A stretch of DNA of 64,000 bases from Pavona decussata (taxonomy: Eukaryota): positions 124,001 through 188,000 of the forward strand of contig CDRNST010000028.1 in assembly GCA_977016875.1 (NCBI GenBank), written 5' to 3'. The translations under genes were made by a program, and so were the position numbers. A model generated the notes under the pieces. The model saw nothing but the letters and a program-made list of their open reading frames with translations. It had not been told where the DNA came from and searched no databases. Within the stretch, counting starts at the first letter, position 1. The number at the start of each line of letters is the position of its first letter. Positions 41,199 through 57,800 of this stretch are shown piece after piece.

Positions 41199-43578
41199 CC
41201 TCTGAACTAAGTTTCCTTCCGTTAGGTTAAAATTAGTTGAACGCCGTCAAAATTCTGAGACTTCCTTTCAAACCTGCTGTATTCTTCGACTTCAGGAAAC
41301 TGCCGGGTAAGCCAGTAAACACCACGTGATAACGAAACGATTTTCTTCCCGTATTAGTTTAGTTTGTCTGCTGCGAGAAACGTAATATGTTTAGCTGTGA
41401 AGTATGTCTTCGTCGCGATCGCTTAACTTGTAATAAATACGAAGTTTTAAAAACAAGCCGTGAAGAGATGAACAATATCAGCAGAAAGCACCTGTCATCT
41501 AACAAGTACATCATCCTTCAGTAGGAAATATGGAAATACAATGAGCAGTTGACAATTTTCACCTGTAACTTTTAAAATATTTTGCAAAGAAGAGTGACTG
41601 TTTATGTTATAAATGTTATTACAGGAAAACCCCACAAATAATCGCGCCTAACGATGTGTAGTTGGCTTGTTTTTATTTTAAGGTAAATTTTTGGTTATCC
41701 TTTGGTGCTGATATTAGCACTCCTGATCACTTTTAAAGCTGCCATCCCCATTTCTCCAGTAGGCTCAATATACAAATCCCTCGTAGAACATGAGGATACC
41801 GTTTACATTTATCTCGAACACAGCCGCATGCATTCATTAGTATGTTTGATTCTGACAAGGCCCTGTTTATCTATCTCGAAACTGACTCGTTTCCCTTAAA
41901 TGTTGTAATACAGGAGTAATTTACTTTGGCCTACCTGAACTTCCCACTATTTCAAATTATGCGCATATAAATTCGAAATTTTAACATCCCTCTCCTCAGA
42001 ATACCCTCCAGGGCATTTCAAAACTAGCGTTTTCTCAAACTTGCGCGACGCTGAAACTCTGGTTTTTTGGACAGGAAAAAACGTCCGTAAAAGTACTAAA
42101 AATAGGCCACCTAGCATTTTAGGAAAGCCAACAGCATCTTTTAAAGTCGGGGAATAACATTCCTTTCCCTATGATTTTTGGCAACTGTTTAAAATTTAAT
42201 TTCAGCTGAAGAATCCGACCATACTCGGAGACCATGGGCAGATTAAGTTGGGTCAGGAGGAAGTCAAAACTGTAAACCTACCAGTTTTGACTTCCTCTTG
42301 ACACAACAACCTGCCACTGGATCTCCGAGGATAGAATCTGATACCATTAAACCGTGTTATTTTACACAAATTCCCCTTTTAAAAGGATATAAAATGAAAT
42401 GGAAATGCCAGAAGCCCTTGAATTTCCCCCTTTATGACCTTCCAGCTTATTTCCAAGAAGTTTATTTTCTGCGGCTTTCGTTTTTCTCTTCTCATATCTA
42501 AAAATCATTGACAGACGTATTTGGCCTGTAATAGACCAATCTCGGCATATTAAAATTCGTACTTGGCTACGAGCTTAGAGGTGCAAAACAACAGAAATTA
42601 CTTTGGAGGCTCAGAGATGAATAATTAATGTTTTTCGTTTTTTATTCCCCTAAGCCTCGAAACCAAGCTAGAATTTTAATATATCCAGATTGCTTTATAA
42701 ACGAAAGGTAAAAGATTCAGCTTCTGCTAAACTCGAGGACGCGTAAGAGTCCCTCGAGGCGTCGCTTGGAACGACTCTAGCTTCTTGAGTGCTTAGCAAA
42801 ACCTCCAGGTGCATTCACACAACTCAATAGTACACGCTGATCGCATGAGGTCATTTACCATTTGTCCTATAACATATAATGACTATGAAATCTATTTGTT
42901 AAGTAATGGCGGAATCTTCACATTGGTTTGTCAGAAAGATGCAAAATTTCGATAAAAGAAACTAGATGTAGTTACAAATCTTTTCACCAGAGTCTGTCAA
43001 AGTACACCAAATATAAAGGACAGGACGAGCTGCCAGGCCAGGTTTCCTTTGTATGCGAGTTTACTTTTTTTTTTGTCCTAATTTTTTTTCTTTTTTTCTC
43101 TCTGTGACGCACTCCGGTAAAAACGTTTTTTGTTATATCGTCAGAGAAAGTATTAAAGCAAACGATTGAACCCACTTTGAATGCTGATTCGTTCTCCTCA
43201 AAATGGCTGTGACGTCGCCCCTTTAAAATTCCTTCTTAATTTTAAATCTCTTATTTTATACATTTATTTTTCGCAGATTATAGATAGAGGAGGTTGTTAC
43301 TTAACTTTCAAAAGGTTCCATTTTGTCTACCAATATGTCGTGAAGCTATTTGACTTTCATATTTTTGGACCATGTACCTTCACCTAGCTCAAGCAGTCAT
43401 ATTGCAATATTTTATCCTACATTATGTAATAAAACGTTGGTTGTACACGTTAGGCAAATCGCAGTAAAATATACAATTTCAACTTCAACGTATTAAGCAT
43501 GCGCGAAGGCATCTTAAATAATAAAATATGATAAATTACGTTTCTTAACTAACCCATCCACGAACGTGGTCAAATCAT

Positions 43579-44472
43579 TTAGTTTTCTTCAATGACAACG
43601 TTTTTACACTTTATCTTTCTTACTTTCTTTGTAACTGCTACTCGTAGTTCACGAAGACGCCAGCAGTACAAAAATGGATTTATCGACGAATTAGCAAATA
43701 CCAAAGTTACTGTAAATGACCACGCTTTCGGCACCAACTTGGTTTTAACGACATCAATCTCACTGTAATAAATTCTACAAACGAACCAAGGAAAATAACA
43801 AAGTAAAGTGCACATATAAAATATAAAAGTGTTAACAGCAGTGCGCTTTAATGACACCACTCTCATATGATGTTCAGTGTCTATTTGCAATGCTTGTTGT
43901 TGAACATGAATGTGCAACTGATGCCGACGAACGATTCGATAAATACCAGTGTACGAGATGCTGGCGGTGATAGTATAAAGGATTATTAACACATAGACAG
44001 CATAAAAATTTGAAGAGATATTAAGAAGTGTAAGAGTCGAGAAAAGAACGTGAAGAAGCCAAATAATACTGATGGTAAAAACAACGCGAGGTGTAGTAAC
44101 TACATTGTTATAAGTCATGTGATATTGAAGGGCCAAATATCGATCCACGCTTATCACCGCCATTGTAGATAGAGAAATTCCACATAAAGCAGTCGCCGTT
44201 GATCCCGATAAACGCATGAGGAAGTCAGCCGAGGAAAATTGTCTGGCGATATACAGTGGTTGTGCTATTAGGCCAACAGCAACATCTGAGAGAGCGAGAC
44301 ATGACAGCAAAATAATGGAAGGCGACCGGAGGGAAAAATTAGTAAAGATGGCTGCTAATACAAAGCTATTGCTTATAATGGAAGTCAACATCAATGGAAC
44401 ATTGAAAGCACAGGTAACAATGGCAGTCAGAAACGAAGCATTAGTTGCGTTTTCATGTACTGATCCGTTCAT
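43579..44472 (-). CDS. Single-exon class A GPCR, recent tandem duplicate of 40305-41198
   Basis: 297 aa; only about a dozen residue differences; flanks also duplicated (offset 3274 bp). Confidence 0.95.
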   Translation of the reverse strand: MNGSVHENATNASFLTAIVTCAFNVPLMLTSIISNSFVLAAIFTNFSLRSPSIILLSCLALSDVAVGLIAQPLYIARQFSSADFLMRLSGSTATALCGISLSTMAVISVDRYLALQYHMTYNNVVTTPRVVFTISIIWLLHVLFSTLTLLNISSNFYAVYVLIILYTITASISYTGIYRIVRRHQLHIHVQQQALQIDTEHHMRVVSLKRTAVNTFIFYMCTLLCYFPWFVCRIYYSEIDVVKTKLVPKAWSFTVTLVFANSSINPFLYCWRLRELRVAVTKKVRKIKCKNVVIEEN

Positions 44473-46307: not shown

Positions 46308-46670
46308 TGCCTACTTTTCTTTCTGTGTATTCGTCAGTTCAGCACATCTTGCGATACTCGGGTTTCCTTGCTCGGTTTAAAACTAGGCAGATAAAGCAGA
46401 AGTTAGCAAGTGCTCTTTGTGTTTTAAAAGAAAATTGGGGGTAAACATGCATTTTTCAGAGATTATAAAGCTTCAATTTGAAAAAAAAAACGCCATACAT
46501 TGCTTTGTATTTTACTGCTTTTTAGAATAATTTTTGCTTAATTATCACCAAAAAAATGCCCTGCTACCCCGGATTTTCTTTCTGGATTTCAGTATCCCAT
46601 GCTTAAATCTGCTTTTCCCGCATAGTCATAAACTATGGAAAAATACTTCTGTATTAGGAGGCACCGTCCT
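46308..46670. mobile_element. Kolobok-like MITE remnant
   Basis: Right end taggaggcaccgtcct|taa; left end eroded, with a fuller form ggacggtgcctact at the paralogous site ~51870. Confidence 0.5.
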
Positions 46671-47661
46671 TAAGCCTCTCCCCAAGAAACCTATTTTCTG
46701 CGGCTCTTACCTTGAGTCTGTACTCGCACAGAGAACGTCAAAACGTGGTAAGAAAATTAGCCACGCTACTCGCCTGCAGCTCGTAGCGTACTTCCCGTTC
46801 TTCTCACCACGTTTTGTCTTCATCTGTGCGTTATCGGAGTACTATGCGTTATCGGAGTACAGACGCACCTCAAAATGAAATTTATTTGTGAAGTAATGGC
46901 AAAATCTAAACATTGGTATAATGGGGTTGACAGGCCTACGCGACTCTCATGTGCGTGTTTAGCCTAAATAAGAGTTTTGCCCTCACGGGTTATGTTTTCC
47001 AAAGAACACCCTTTTCTTTATGAAAAGAGCGGTGCTCCCGGTAAAATTTTCTTTTAGCGCTGGATTTTCTTCTTTTTAAATGCCATCTATGATTTGGAGG
47101 ATTTGCGCGATAGACACTGAACAAAGCTATGTGTTTAACTGTCGCATGTGTTGTAATTGATCTCAAAGGTCATTTTGACCTCTTGTTGTTACGTTTCCGT
47201 TTAGCGACTGTCGTTCTTATGCCGTTTGTGGCATTTAGTTTAGGCTTGGTATGGCTCATTTCAGTGCGTCTGGTGGCAGTATAGCCTCTCTTTTTATCGT
47301 TGTAAGGATAGGAGTTGAACCGTGTAATAACTATACATTATCTTGCAGCTTTTGTCAGATTGCCGGGCCCGGCTATTTGCTTTTGGTGCAAGATGCTGTG
47401 CTTCTTATCACGGTTATTTGTCCCTTGATCCGTTCTTAAGCATTGTAGCTTCTTTGAAAGCTATGCAATGCGTTAAATTGAGGGCTAAAGGCCGCTTAAG
47501 TTACGGCTGTGTGTTTTGTTGTCGCTCCGCTAAGCTCTGTAACTGTGAGGTTTGTGTTGCGGGAGCTTAGTATTTTCCTCCTGTGTTTACGTGCTCTGGC
47601 CAGGGGCTGCTTCTAGTCCTTCGGCCGTAAGTAAATTCTGTAGCATTTAAGGCAATGGTCA

Positions 47662-47709
47662 GGCAAGACCGCGGTTTCGATCCTAATCTTGTGGATCTCA
47701 TCAGTTGCC
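47662..47709 (-). ncRNA. Type I hammerhead ribozyme with minimal palindromic helix III
   Basis: Minus strand: GGCAA-CUGAUGA-GAUCC-acaagauua-GGAUC-GAAA-CCGCGG-UC^UUGCC. Core intact, helices I and II perfectly paired, GUC cleavage triplet. Confidence 0.93.
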
Positions 47710-47749
47710 GATTCTTCAGAAATGATAGAGATGAGTTCTCGGTATCATT

Positions 47750-48115
47750 TCAACAAACGCGCTCTCTTGTCAAATTATAAACCCATTGTTCGGATCGAAA
47801 ACCCTGCAATTCAATTGGCTCCTTGGTTTGAGCCAATCTGGTGGCTGCGAGTTCGATCCATGGTGGGGCTAAGCTTGACGCTGTGTTTTCTATGATGGCT
47901 AAAACGTTAAATTTTGTACATGAACTGTCGTTTTGTTCGCGGATAGGTGTTTCCGTAGAACTGTGCATATGTGTTGCAGCATATAGCTCACTATGGAGAC
48001 TGTATAAAGCTCTATACACCGCCAGGAGTGCGATTTTCGTCTTTGTTTTTTCGGAGTTCATGTACAGTATGTCTTTCACGACATGAGACGGGGCCTGTCT
48101 GTAATTAATCAACAT
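47750..48115 (-). CDS. Hypothetical 121-aa ORF inside the hammerhead element
   Basis: ATG-initiated, same polarity as the ribozyme, stops ~40 nt before it; no recognisable domain. Confidence 0.25.
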   Translation of the reverse strand: MLINYRQAPSHVVKDILYMNSEKTKTKIALLAVYRALYSLHSELYAATHMHSSTETPIREQNDSSCTKFNVLAIIENTASSLAPPWIELAATRLAQTKEPIELQGFRSEQWVYNLTRERVC

Positions 48116-48190
48116 GGCATAATGGGGTTGACAGGCCTACGCGACTCTCATGTGCGTGTTTAGCCTAAATAAGAGTTTTGCCCTCACGGG

Positions 48191-48730
48191 TTATGTTTTC
48201 CAAAGAACACCCTTTTCTTTATGAAAAGAGCGGTGCTCCCGGTAAAATTTTCTTTTAGCGCTGGATTTTCTTCTTTTTAAATGCCATCTAAGAGTCGAAA
48301 TAAGAACCTGAAAGAGCCAAATAATAATGATTAGGAAAAAAACACGAGATGTAGTAACTAAATTGTCATGAGTCATGTGATATTGAAGGGCTAAAAATCG
48401 ATCCACGCTTATCAGCGCCATTGTAGAGAGAGCAATTCCACAAAACACACTCCCCATTGTATCCCCTACACGCATGAGGAGGTCAGCCGAGGAAAATAGT
48501 CTTGCAATATACAGTGGTTGTGCTATTAGGCCAACAGCAACATCTGAGACAGCGAGATAAGGCAACAAAATAATGGAAGGCGACCGGAGGGAAGAAGTAG
48601 TAAAGATGGCTGCTAATACAAAGCTATTGCTGATAATGGCAGTCAACATTAATGGAACATTGAAAGCACAGGTAACAATGGCAGTCAGAAACGAAGCATT
48701 AGTTGCGTTTTCATGTACTGATCCGTTCAT
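48191..48730 (-). pseudogene. Truncated GPCR (TM1-TM4) fused in frame to ~32 insert-derived residues
   Basis: Homology ends at ..QVLISTL(R); the tail WHLKRRKSSAKRKFY.. comes from the terminal repeat of the insert. Confidence 0.9.
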
Positions 48731-50766
48731 CTTCTCAACCAAGTTTCCTTGCGTTAGGTTTAAAATTAGTTTTACGCCGTCAAAATTCTGAGTCTTCCTT
48801 TCAGACCTGCTGTATTCTTCCACTTTAGGAAACTGCCGGGTAAGCCAGTAAACACCACGTGGTAACCCGCAGCAAGGCTAAAACAACTGAAGAGGCTTAG
48901 CAAAATGGTTAAACAAAACTACACCCCCCCCCCCTCCCCCCGTCCCGTTACTTAAAGAAACAGAGTATTATGTATAGTTTGCTTGTTTTTACTTTAAATA
49001 ATTTTTTGGATATCCTTTGGTGCTGATCTTAGCACTCTCGTTCCCTTTTAAAGCTGCCATCCCCAATTCTTTATAAGGTTCAATATAAAAACATTGAAAA
49101 AACAAGCGACTCGTAGAACATAAGGATACCGTTTGCATTTACCTCGAACACAGCTGTGTTTACTAGTATGTTTGATTCTGACAAGGCCCTGTTTATCTAT
49201 CTCGAAACTGACTCGTTTCCCTTGAATGTTATAAAAGTACAGGAGTAATTTACTTTGGCCCACCTGGATTTCTCACTATTTCGAATAATTAATGCCCATG
49301 TAAATTCGAAACTTTAACATCCCTCTGCTCAGGGTTTCCTCCAGGGCATTTCAAAATTAGCGCTTTCTCAAACTTCCGCAACGCTACAACTCTAGTAATT
49401 TTCGTTTTCGGAGAGGAAAAGTCATCCGTAATACTACCAAAATTAGGCCTCCTAACATTTTCGGAAACCCAACAGCGGCTCGTAAATTCGGGGAATAACA
49501 TTCCTTTCCCTAAGATTTTCGGCAACTGATTAAATTTTAATTTCAGCTGAAGAATCAGACCATATACTCGGAGACCCATGGGCAGATTAAGTTTTGTCAG
49601 GAGGAAGTCAAAACTGTAAACTTACCCGCTTTGACTTCCTCTTGACACAACCATCTGCCTCTGGGTCTCCGAGGATAGAATTCGAGCCCATTAAACCGTG
49701 TTATTTTACACAAATTCCCCTTTTAAAAGGATATAAAATGAAATGGAAATGCAGGAATCCCTTCAATTTCCCCCTTTACGACCTTCCAGCTTATTCCCAA
49801 AAAGTTTATTTTCTGCGGCTCTTGTTTTTCTCTTCTTATATCTTAAAATCGTTGACAGAAATATTTGGCCTGTAATAGACCAATCTCGATATATTAAAAA
49901 TCATACTTGGCTACGAGCTAAGAGGTGCAAAACAACAGAAATTAACTTCAGAGGCTCAGAGATAAATAATTCTGTTTTTCGTTTATTATTCCCCTAAGCC
50001 TCGAAGCCAAGCTAGAATTTTAATATATCCAAATTGCTTTATGAACAAAAGGTAATTGATTCATCGTCTGCTCAGCTCAAAAGAAGCGTAAGAGTCGCTC
50101 GAGGCGACGCCTTGAGCGACTCTAGCTTCTCGAGTGCTTAGTAAAACATCCCAAGTGCATTTACAACTCAATAGTGCACGCTGATCGCATGAGCTATCTA
50201 CCATTTGTCCTATAACATATAATAAATCAGAAACTTCAAAGTTCTCTTCCCCCTCCCCCTCCCGGGGCAGTCGCGGGTAATCACATTCCGTCGCCCTAAA
50301 ATTTCCAGCAAATGTTTTGAAAATTTTCAGCTAAAGAATCCGAACAACTGACTAACTAGCTAACTGTGTAAGCTTGCACCAATTTGCTTTTAAAGGCCAT
50401 AAAATAATGTAAGAATAGTGGTAATGTTTAAATATAGAAGGTGGGCTGGCACTAAAGCTTGAGCAAAGCAATTGATTAATCATTAAAAAAGGAAAAGAAT
50501 AAATAAATAAATGATTAAATAAATACCAGTTGAAAACTCATGAACAGTAAGACTGTAAGATGTTTAACTTGACTTTTGTTTTGAAACGTTTTGAGTGGTT
50601 GACAATTTTACCTGAAACCGTTCAATTATTTTGCAAAAAGAATGACTGTTTATGTCATAATTATTATAACAGGAAAGGCCCACAAATAATCGAAAATTTT
50701 CAGCTGAAGAATCCGAACAACTGACTAACTAGCTCATTGTGTAAGCTTACACAAATTTGCTTTTAA

Positions 50767-54816: not shown

Positions 54817-57800
54817 TCACGGTAGTACTCCACTCTCGAGGAGACACAGTTTAGTAATAGGTCTTGATAAAATGGTAGACCTCGTTGCAACCTTGGCAGA
54901 TCTTATGAATCCATCCTTTCCTGGGTGGACTTCAACGATACGCCCCAAAGGCCATTGACCTCGGTGAACTCTCTCGTCTGCAATAAGTACAAGATCACCA
55001 ACAGCAAACTTCCGACGTGGGTTGATCCATTTCTGTCGTTCTTGTAGAGAGGGCAAGTATTCTGCTAGCCATCTCTTCCAAAAGACATCAGTGAGGTACT
55101 GGACTTGTTTCCAGCGAATCCGACAATACAAATCTCCTTCACGAACACACCAGGAGGCAAATTAAGATTTGATCTCTGAAGAAGCAGGCGATTCGGAGTC
55201 AAAGGTTCTAGATCAGTGGGGTTGTCACTGTTAGGAGTTAACGGGCGGCTGTTAAGGATCCCTTCGATTTCGGCCATCAGGGAAGGCAGGGTTTCTCCAG
55301 AAATCAGTTGTTCACGTAGGAGACTTCTGAGGATCTTTCGTATGGAGCGTATGACTCGTTCCCATACCCCTCCCATGTGAGAGGCCCCACGGGGGTTGAA
55401 TTTCCATTCGATATTCCTCTGGCGAAGGAAGGTCTTCGTTTTCTTCTGGTTCCAATTCTCTAACGCTTCCTTTAACTCTCTTTCTGCACCGCGAAGGTTG
55501 GTTCCATTGTCGCTTCTTGCAACCTTGGGGTTTCCTTTTCGGCTGATAAACCTTCGTAAGGCATTAATAAGTGAAACTGTCTGGAGAGACTCGGTTACTA
55601 CAATATGGGTGGCCCTCATCGTAAGACACGAGAAAAGACATCCGTAATGTTTCACGGTACTTCTTCCCTGCTTTACGTACAGCGGACCAAAAAAGTCGAT
55701 GCCCACATTGGAAAATGGTGGCTCCCCAGGAATCAATCTATCTGCGGGAAGATTTGCCATAACTTGCTGGCCACGAACTGCATTTTGCTTTCGACACGTT
55801 AAACAACCACCCAGCACTTTACGAACGGCTGCTCGTCCTTTGACGATCCAGTATTTCTGCCGCAAACGCGAGAGAACATATTCTTGTCCAAAATGGCCGA
55901 CGGACTTGTGATGTTCCATAATGAGCAATTTGGAAATGTGATGATTGTGTGGCAACAACAATTGGTGTTTTGACTCGTAGGCCAGTGGTGCGTTCTCAAG
56001 TCTTCCGCCAACCCTTAACATCCCTTCCTTGTCAAGAAATGGCTTCAACTTGTAAATAGAACCAAGCGAACCGGTATTCCTCAGCATAACTTTCTCTTGC
56101 CTTGTAGACTTTGCACTTCGGAGGACATCAATTACCTCAGGAAAGGACACTTTCTGCACGTAGCTTATGATCGACCTCTCAGCGGACTTCAAATTCTCCA
56201 GGGATAATTCTCCAGGCGGATGCGGAACATCGAGCTCAACCGTGGGGTCCCCCTTGAAATGGAGTTTCCTCTGGATGTAATCCTTGAATTGCAAGATCCA
56301 GGCCACCCTCTTCTTAAGGGCATACCACGAGGAATATCGCTGAATCATCAGGTCTAATATGCACACGTCTGTCACCTTGGTTACTTGATTCGCTTGAACT
56401 TGTCTTTTAATCTCCGGATCTTGATCCGAAAATGGTGCCAAAGGATCTGGGAAGATTGGCCAAGATGTTTGTTCACTCCACAGGAATTTAGATCCTTGAT
56501 ACCATCTGTCCTGACTTAGCAGTCTTTCAACAGTCAACCCCCTACTTGCATCATCAGCAGGGTTACTGTTTGAATCCAAAAAGTTCCATTTAGAAGGCTT
56601 CGAACCATCATGAATAACTGCTAATCGGTTCGCAACAAAGGTTTGGAATCTTTTGTTTTCGTTCCGGATGTACTGGAGCACTGCTGTAGAGTCCGTCCAA
56701 AGGACTGATCTGTCGATGCTTATTTATAATTCTTCTCTCAACGTTCGGTCCAGTCTGACTGCAAGTACTGCTGCTGATAGTTCGAGCTTAGGTACGGTCA
56801 TGGGCTTGACATGAGCCAAACGTGTTTTCGCTGTAACGAAACTGCAGTGGATCTCTTTGGCTTCGTTGATGAATCTCAAGTACGAAACCGCACCGTACGC
56901 CATCTGGGACGCATACGCGAAGTGGTGGATCTCTGTAACTGTTGGAGAACCAAAATATATCGGCTTAAAGCTGAGTGGAATCGCAATGTACGAGAGCTGT
57001 TGCAGTTCTGAAAGCCATCCGTTCCAGCGTAAGCTTTCGTCTTGGCCTATGTGCTCGTCCCAGTCATAGCCTTTCTTGCAAAGGTCTTGGATCAGCTTCT
57101 TCGCTAGAAGAATAAACGGTGCCAGAATACCAAGCGGGTCATATACAGAACTGTTTGCGGACAAAATGCCTCTGCGAGGTGGGGGCTTGTCTCTTGCAGT
57201 AATCTTGAGGGTTAGCGTATCTGCATTCACATTCCATTGGACCCCTAGGGTACGTTCAACCGGAAGGACCCCAGCATTCAAATCGAGGTCCAAGACTGAC
57301 GACGCTCTCTTGGACCTTGGGATACTATCCAAGACATCTTTGTCGTTGCATAACCATTTTGTCAACCTGAATCCTCCCTTGGACAGCAGTTCTGTGAGTT
57401 CCTTTCTCAAATTTCTGGCCACACTTGAAGACGCCACGGACTTTAAACAGTCGTCCACATAAAAATTCTTCAGTACAGTGCTGATAACCTCTGAGGAGAA
57501 ATCTCCACTCTGGTCTTGAGCAGTCTTTCTGAGGCTAAAGCTAGCGCAACTTGGTGAAGACGTACTCCCAAAGAGGTGTACCTCCATCCGATATTCGATT
57601 GGCTGCTTTGATAAATCATCATCAGGCAACCATAAAAATCTCAAGGCGTCATGATCTTTCGGATCTACTCTGACTTGGTGGAACATAGCTTCTATATCAG
57701 AAACCAGGGCCACCGATTCTTGGCGAAATCTTTCAAGTACCCCCAAAGATGTTATTGGTTAAATCTGGGCCATGCAACAGTTGGTCATTCAGGGAGACAC

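Follow-up and report, generated by a model that had tools for sequence, protein, structure and literature searches.

A 1201-nt hammerhead-bearing repeat of Pavona decussata as a probable dependant of Penelope-like elements

This study concerns a 1373-bp insertion in the genome of Pavona decussata, located on the minus strand at positions 46918-48290 of a 64,000-nt stretch of contig CDRNST010000028.1 (assembly GCA_977016875.1, positions 124,001 to 188,000). We call this whole stretch the window, and coordinates refer to it unless a locus is named. The insertion is, quite probably, a young member of a retrotransposon family of ~700 copies that is non-coding and non-autonomous, has a unit of 1201 nt, and is mobilised in trans by the reverse transcriptase (RT)/GIY-YIG machinery of a Penelope-like element (PLE). 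Our verdict is that the element is a large retrozyme without long terminal repeats (non-LTR), of the known animal kind and dependent on PLEs, rather than the founder of a new class. The part worth keeping is the junction-level evidence, which points to cleavage by the ribozyme in vivo and to co-reverse transcription with a Neptune-like PLE.

Architecture of the insertion and its ribozyme

The unit is numbered 1-1201 on the ribozyme strand, with position 1201 at window 46914. A repeat search detects a direct repeat of 179 nt with 99% identity (46914-47092 and 48115-48293) at a spacing of 1201, and its strictly identical core of 172 bp (46918-47089 and 48119-48290) confirms the terminal redundancy described in the initial annotation. 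A repeat of such length and identity cannot be chance. Read along the sense (ribozyme) strand, which is the minus strand, the insertion is a 1.14-mer. It opens with an upstream partial unit at 48119-48290 (unit ~1026-1197), a 5' redundancy that resembles a pseudo-LTR, and continues into a single complete unit of 1201 bp at 46918-48118, whose terminal part (46918-47089) is the second copy of the redundancy and ends in ...CCCCATTAT, the fixed 3' end of the family. Alignment with paralogous flanks places the left edge at 46917|46918 and the right one at 48288-48290, where a TA is common to element and target; in unit numbering, the 5' end (48290) is ~1026 and the 3' end (46918) is 1197.

The unit is non-coding and has a GC content of 43.5%. 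Its open reading frames (ORFs) do not exceed 121 aa and contain no credible Pfam domain, and a combined ORF and Pfam check found no RT or GIY-YIG ORF in it, so that the element can be at most a non-autonomous PLE dependant. Neither TG..CA ends nor a target-site duplication (TSD) were found at the window copy, and the earlier statement that both of these, as well as RT and endonuclease coding, are missing is upheld there. ARAGORN reports no tRNA in the whole window, so the GGTTCGATCC-like stretch at ~47850-47870 (plus strand) is not a detectable tRNA; likewise, no tRNA-, 5S- or 7SL-derived head was found (ARAGORN and Rfam).

The unit carries a type I hammerhead at 47661-47710 (minus strand; unit 405-454), which matches Rfam family RF00163 over its full length with 24.8 bits and E=0.004. 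This match comes from an E-value search of 46500-48700 (2.2 kb) and the family's gathering score is 34; Rfam run at the gathering threshold over the whole window reported nothing. The conserved core is complete (CUGAUGA, GAAA, and C17). Helix I consists of GGCAA/UUGCC and helix II of 5 bp, whereas helix III has 2 bp only (A-U and C-G) and is closed by the palindromic, dimer-prone loop CGCG (ACCGCGGU). Metazoan type I hammerheads usually have this architecture, in which helix III is short and capped by a palindromic loop, and presumably work as dimers (PMC4209133). Cleavage is predicted between 47667 and 47666, i.e., unit 448|449, and the motif lies outside the terminal redundancy (unit 1026-1197), both as the initial annotation had proposed.

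Among 56 sampled sequences, 33 carry the motif unaltered, and the common variant affects the free position N7. No covariation support for the hammerhead was found among the copies because these are too similar to each other, and the changes in older copies resemble neutral decay. When the whole unit is folded as a circle, helices I and II are present, and this fold is much more stable than dinucleotide shuffles (-322.5 versus -257 +/- 7.5 kcal/mol, z = -8.7); the antisense strand folds better still (-377). The circular minimum-energy fold is locally branched rather than rod-like, with 55% of its positions paired and a median pair span of 41 nt. In the Rfam search of 46500-48700, the minus-strand hammerhead is the sole ribozyme at E up to 10, with no second-polarity ribozyme found. 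Since it has one hammerhead only, the window copy cannot alone release a unit-length or circular RNA.

Copy ends and the template behind them

A first look at the 602-Mb genome gives 703 candidates for the unit, the best of which are 89-100% identical. Fifty loci were fetched and oriented by their ribozyme strand, yielding 36 independent copies. Judged by its 97-99% identity, the family is young, and the recent insertion that had been suggested for the window copy is supported.

The 3' end is identical in position in all 36 sampled copies (unit 1197-1201, up to +6; ...CCCCATTATGCCA), and variation is confined to the 5' end. Below unit length there are 21 independent copies with 5' ends at 42 to 772, and the other 15 continue across the unit junction and have their 5' ends in a second unit, at positions between 1166 and 620. 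These greater-than-unit copies mostly span 1.03-1.6 units, and most copies overall are single, dispersed, and truncated. Real arrays exist as well. One, on contig C181, comprises 4.15 units with a period of 1198, and a second, on contig C46, is an irregular array of ~5 units with junctions 1185|1, 1201|31, and 1201|927. The constant period of ~1201 nt foreseen in the initial annotation is thus found in the arrays (1198-1201), and these contain no ORF, which also speaks against the unit being the end of a longer, coding Penelope element. The terminal redundancy varies from copy to copy (36 to 582 nt) and is missing from many. Head-to-head inverted copies with abutting 5' ends occur at L021/L031 and L009.

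This geometry splits the earlier proposal of a circularly permuted copy from a circular or tandem 1201-nt template. The copying of more than one unit from a repeating template stands; circular permutation does not, as the prediction of copies with differing permutation points failed in the sample. A fixed 3' end combined with variable 5' ends instead implies target-primed reverse transcription that leaves 5'-truncated copies and partial tandems of the Penelope type, not random permutation. As none of the 36 copies starts at unit position 1, the unit junction must have been internal to the copied template.

The 5' ends themselves are not evenly spread. Five of the 36 fall at 448-458, an interval set a priori around the predicted cleavage site 448|449 (binomial p ~2e-5), and a metatranscriptome contig joins the 3' end of the unit, via 8 extra letters, to position 450. 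Because retrocopy 5' ends cluster at this predicted site, the ribozyme appears to cut in vivo, with the 3' cleavage product being reverse transcribed; the evidence for this is indirect but specific. A second cluster, at 1004-1026, comprises 6 of the 15 long copies (p ~3e-7), among them the window copy and the C181 array, which lie in unrelated flanks yet have the identical first base (~1026). We suggest that 1004-1026 represents the preferred 5' end of the full-length RNA, comparable to the transcription start inside the pseudo-LTR of PLEs.

At the other end, 3' ends are spread over 1197 to 1201+6. The first flanking base is T in 14 of 20 copies, followed by G in 9 of 14, both matching the start of a next unit (p ~2e-4 and 5e-4, respectively). 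From the scattered 3' ends and the target microhomology past the boundary it follows that the template ran beyond the nominal unit end into another unit copy. It was therefore multimeric or circular, and was primed by microhomology.

A circular template would fit a true circular-RNA retrozyme cycle, in which a tandem transcript gives a hammerhead-released monomer of 1201 nt that is circularised by tRNA ligase and copied in a rolling-circle manner by the PLE RT from a fixed internal site. Several observations are in line with this cycle: the template that continues past the unit end and the lack of starts at position 1, the existence of arrays able to give two hammerheads per transcript, the 5' ends at the cleavage site (read as in vivo cutting), the stable circular fold, the occurrence of the family in contigs from RNA libraries (one of them across the unit junction), and the circular RNAs (circRNAs) formed by smaller coral retrozymes (PMC7229834). 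However, linear multimeric transcripts of genomic arrays explain all of these equally well. Moreover, the poly(A) found at the same 3' site in older relatives (see below) marks a former linear RNA end, the repeated use of 1004-1026 as 5' end is more suggestive of a transcription start than of a stop on a circle, and the irregular junctions of the C46 array fit template switching better than faithful rolling. Helix III is weak, too, and hammerheads 1.2 kb apart dimerise poorly. In balance, we consider such a cycle conceivable but rather doubtful.

Coral metatranscriptomes contain sequence related to the unit. Contigs of two metatranscriptome studies (runs X15 and X16, and run X17) cover most of it, with DNA carry-over of a 700-copy repeat being a possible source. 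In run X3, whose RNA origin is only guessed, a 781-nt contig reads across the unit junction with 386 nt upstream; the same junction is also present in genomic arrays. Summed contig depth in X15-X17 is several- to >100-fold higher at unit ~358-1023 (window 47092-47757) than over the rest (46918-47091 and 47758-48127), and the corresponding rise in X3 is just ~3-7-fold, contig depth being no measure of expression. Related families probably share this core of the unit (~358-1023). Runs X7, X12, and X14, from three other organisms (B, C, and D), contain 46-58% of the 31-mers of the unit, which implies near-identical copies outside organism A.

The same geometry bears on two further origins, namely an LTR-type element (a terminal-repeat retrotransposon in miniature, TRIM, or a plant-style LTR retrozyme) and the integrated cDNA of a circular RNA replicon of exogenous origin, viroid-like or delta-like in kind. 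The 172-bp terminal direct redundancy, the ribozyme, and the lack of coding capacity would suit both, yet there are no TG..CA ends, primer-binding site (PBS), polypurine tract (PPT), or TSD, and the supposed LTR has a different length in each copy and is often absent; the variable 5' ends contradict such origins as well. An ordinary LTR or TRIM element with constant ends and TSDs is therefore not what the copies look like. Plant LTR retrozymes give circRNAs of 600-1000 nt and carry type III hammerheads in true LTRs, with PBS and PPT, 4-bp TSDs, and Ty3/Gypsy machinery (Cervera et al. 2016, PMC4918200). The family described here shares with them a comparable size class, a non-autonomous nature, a hammerhead, and terminal direct repeats, but none of the other features (type III hammerhead in an LTR, PBS, PPT, 4-bp TSD, Ty3/Gypsy use). 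Viroid-like and delta-like replicons are equally unlike it: the ribozyme exists in one polarity only, the fold is branched and not rod-like, there is no ORF, and ~700 genomic copies share a fixed 3' end. We thus deem all of these origins highly improbable, and the undescribed viroid-like class raised in the initial annotation is unlikely, given the one-polarity ribozyme and the branched fold.

Penelope-like partners and the mode of mobilisation

Animal retrozymes have been proposed to depend on PLEs (PMC7229834; bioRxiv 10.64898/2026.07.22.740005). PLE insertions are marked by 5' truncation, partial tandems (pseudo-LTRs), and an inverted 5'-truncated copy at the 5' end (PMC8557442). The unit family displays the same traits: its 3' end is fixed, its copies are often 5'-truncated, and its partial tandems form pseudo-LTRs. 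The inverted 5'-truncated partner is found too, either as unit against unit (L021/L031 and L009) or as PLE against unit (L020 and L050).

The latter two loci are physical chimeras. In L020 (contig C519), an inverted PLE is followed by unit 93-1197 and then by the last 236 nt of a PLE 3' untranslated region (UTR) in sense orientation; the inverted part holds a 320-aa open frame with PLE-type RT motifs (FIDD) and a CxxC linker, no more than 6 bp from the 5' end of the unit. In L050 (contig C46), ~330 nt of sense PLE RT coding sequence lead straight into the head of the array at unit position 1014, with no spacer between them, and directly upstream lies an inverted 5'-truncated PLE comprising the RT C-terminus, the CxxC linker, GIY-YIG (at the Pfam cut-off), and the 3' UTR. 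Both chimeras involve the same Neptune-like PLE family, are independent copies, and have base-exact junctions. Two such adjacencies in ~37 copies would arise by chance with p ~1e-4 to 1e-3. We infer that they are template switches between unit RNA and PLE RNA within single integration events, which would implicate the PLE RT. Copies of the chimera-forming family have open frames of 1000-1100 aa, and the genome contains at least 933 GIY-YIG candidates.

Some further observations concern these PLEs and their surroundings. A tandem array of the chimera-forming Neptune-like PLE, with a period of ~3.78 kb and several 1100-aa frames, is located at G000:C36:2795454-2863322. A 15-bp snap-back inverted repeat (L050:2406-2420 and 2461-2475, within 2406-2475) marks the turn from the inverted PLE to the sense PLE fragment that is fused to the array, and was perhaps left behind by hairpin-primed second-strand synthesis. 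At L050:1205-1262 (minus strand), ~100 nt from the PLE 3' end, inspection by eye suggests a minimal core resembling a hammerhead (CUGAAGA, a 7-bp helix II, and GAAA), which Rfam does not confirm. In L034 and L035 (both read as reverse complement), a unit fragment starting from the cleavage site (448) is preceded by a by-eye type I hammerhead, unconfirmed as well, and then by an A-rich end. The helix I of this by-eye motif is identical to that of the unit, whereas helices II and III are different. These features lie at L034:1560-1607, 915-1085, and 2349-2519 and L035:306-500 (reverse complement), and the composite of hammerhead and unit fragment is present on two contigs (C250 and C224); in L034, part of a second PLE family (33-37% aa identity) comes after the unit fragment. 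With E up to 1, Rfam found no hammerhead in the PLE 3' UTR nor in L034, and the by-eye motifs there are unconfirmed.

Mobilisation by a long interspersed nuclear element (LINE) has to be weighed against the PLE, as older relatives end in poly(A) and show 5' truncation. The element would then resemble a short interspersed nuclear element (SINE), and the partial tandems and PLE neighbours would be secondary rearrangements or coincidence. The poly(A) tails, 15-30 nt long, are found at the same 3' position in older copies (91-93% identity) and in a ~1.1-kb sister family. This sister family consists of its own 195-nt head (starting with CAGGCGCGGATCCAGG) joined to unit 290-1197, with a mostly decayed hammerhead (L051:9184-10000, L052:9095-10000, L053, and L054, on contigs C2, C28, C436, and C148). 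The poly(A) implies that RNAs once truly ended, with a poly(A) tail, at this 3' site. The young copies, including the window copy, lack poly(A), however, and unlike SINEs they have no tRNA, 5S, or 7SL head. Partial tandems and inverted 5' partners are foreign to LINEs and SINEs, and two independent base-exact fusions with the same PLE family would be left to coincidence. For the family as it is now, we find this explanation improbable.

Mobilisation by a PLE remains our preferred reading, and several points weigh against it. The poly(A) relatives just described possibly reflect an earlier LINE-type phase with polyadenylated templates. The hammerhead score (24.8) lies under the Rfam gathering threshold (34), the isolated 62-nt motif does not adopt the hammerhead as its minimum-energy structure, and a distance of 750 nt separates the motif from the 3' end, so that it is not part of the redundancy, in contrast to the hammerheads of PLE pseudo-LTRs. 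A small cluster of 5' ends also exists at 328-337, so that some of the clustering may reflect RT pausing and not RNA ends. A systematic search detected a TSD in just 1 of 28 copies (L008, 8 bp). Comparison of the unit with the single PLE family read revealed no similarity to its 3' UTR or pseudo-LTR, and the unit is thus not a recent deletion derivative of that PLE. Lastly, the ~36 copies sampled from ~700 were chosen by score and are skewed to long, well-matching ones, and the RNA evidence consists of contigs only, from which RNA ends, strand, and circularity are not readable.

When compared with known systems, the unit comes closest to the metazoan non-LTR retrozymes. These typically measure 150-450 nt, with 220-240 nt in the coral studied, for which circRNA was shown (Cervera & de la Pena 2020, PMC7229834), and the consensus lengths of animal retrozymes range over 51-972 bp (Li, Clavereau & Pollet 2026, bioRxiv 10.64898/2026.07.22.740005). 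Like them, the unit is non-coding, has one type I hammerhead with intact core and a short helix III with palindromic loop, is low in GC, forms head-to-tail multimers (C181 and C46), and has no LTR, PBS, or PPT; its TSDs are irregular where they are not missing, PLEs abound in the host genome, and RNA libraries contain the sequence. Unlike them, its 1201 nt exceed both the typical size and the 972-bp maximum. The initial description as several times larger than animal retrozymes was nonetheless overstated, considering this published upper length. Also different is that long arrays are outnumbered by monomers or 1.x-mers that are scattered through the genome, truncated at the 5' end, and fixed at the 3' end, and that, where those elements have known circRNAs, the unit is known here from DNA copies and contigs.

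With Neptune-type PLEs, on the other hand, the family shares strong 5' truncation, the pseudo-LTR tandem, the inverted 5'-truncated copy, and a sense-strand hammerhead (PMC8557442; PMC4209133), next to being physically chimeric with a PLE at two loci. In contrast to PLEs, it has no RT or GIY-YIG ORF, and its hammerhead is of the canonical metazoan style, mid-unit and outside the redundancy, while that of PLEs is minimal and located inside the pseudo-LTR.

The following course of events would account for the copies. A transcript longer than one unit, derived from tandem master copies or from a circle, would serve as template for target-primed reverse transcription. Synthesis would begin by microhomology at the AUUAUGCCAUGUUGA region and proceed toward the 5' end. 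Full-length products would halt at the preferred RNA 5' end (1004-1026), yielding 1.14-1.17-mers such as the window copy, which would correspond to a PLE plus its pseudo-LTR. RNAs already cut by the hammerhead would lead to copies starting at the cleavage site, and template switching to other RNAs would produce the tandems, inversions, and PLE chimeras.

Target site and significance

The window copy sits within a tandem array of intronless genes for rhodopsin-like G protein-coupled receptors (GPCRs), in the same orientation as the gene it interrupts. The array extends over window 2776-58776 with at least 10 paralogs of ~305-313 aa (ORFs at 2776, 11746, 14318, 18809, 23403, 27783, 40308, 43582, 53065, and 57859) and a period of ~3.3 kb near the insertion. 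The 5' part (~150 codons) of the interrupted paralog occupies 48291-48823 on the minus strand, as seen from the ORF and paralog alignments, and the ORF at 48191-48823 (minus strand) joins these first ~150 codons to element sequence. Homology with the neighbouring paralog (43579-44472) extends from 48866 down to 48289 and then ends. A GPCR paralog as simple empty site was rejected, since the left flank does not continue the gene. Instead, a sensitive BLAST search shows that the left flank, up to 46917, matches sequence ~650 bp past the stop codon of other array units (30379-30421 and 42885-42927), and ~1.1 kb of target, equal to paralog 42928-44030, was replaced by the insertion. The copy landed in sense in a GPCR coding region, replacing ~1.1 kb.

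When aligned with those same array units (30379-30421 and 42885-42927), the native flank at 46909-46917 (minus strand), AACATTGGT, resembles the unit junction CAACATGGC, a likeness that implies priming on a template extending past the unit end. In other respects the window copy is unremarkable, an insertion that disrupts one gene of a redundant GPCR array.

Other mobile sequences are found in the neighbourhood. A palindromic repeat of ~305 bp at 46368-46674, resembling a miniature inverted-repeat transposable element (MITE), is unrelated to the insertion, matches both strands, and has >5000 first-look candidates in the genome; its family also interrupts the PLE copy at L020:78-372. Pol fragments of a BEL/Pao-type LTR retrotransposon (Peptidase_A17, RVT_1, and an integrase zinc-binding domain) lie at 55068-57758 on the minus strand.

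For animal hammerhead repeats, both the identity of the mobiliser and the role of the ribozyme are still argued chiefly from co-occurrence and sequence similarity. The unit family provides genomic footprints on both questions, namely the cleavage-site starts and the base-exact PLE chimeras, and the chimeras indicate that unit RNA and PLE RNA were copied in the same events. A bolder version, to which we give limited credence, would make the 1201-nt unit the largest animal retrozyme yet, with a circularised monomer that is copied in a rolling-circle manner by a Neptune-like PLE RT from a fixed internal site. If true, the genome would record each step of it in the form of cleavage-site starts, greater-than-unit copies, and PLE-unit chimeric cDNAs, and this would be the first junction-level evidence for who mobilises animal retrozymes. 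As the family is young and its likely helper has intact ORFs of 1100 aa, the system should be experimentally tractable.

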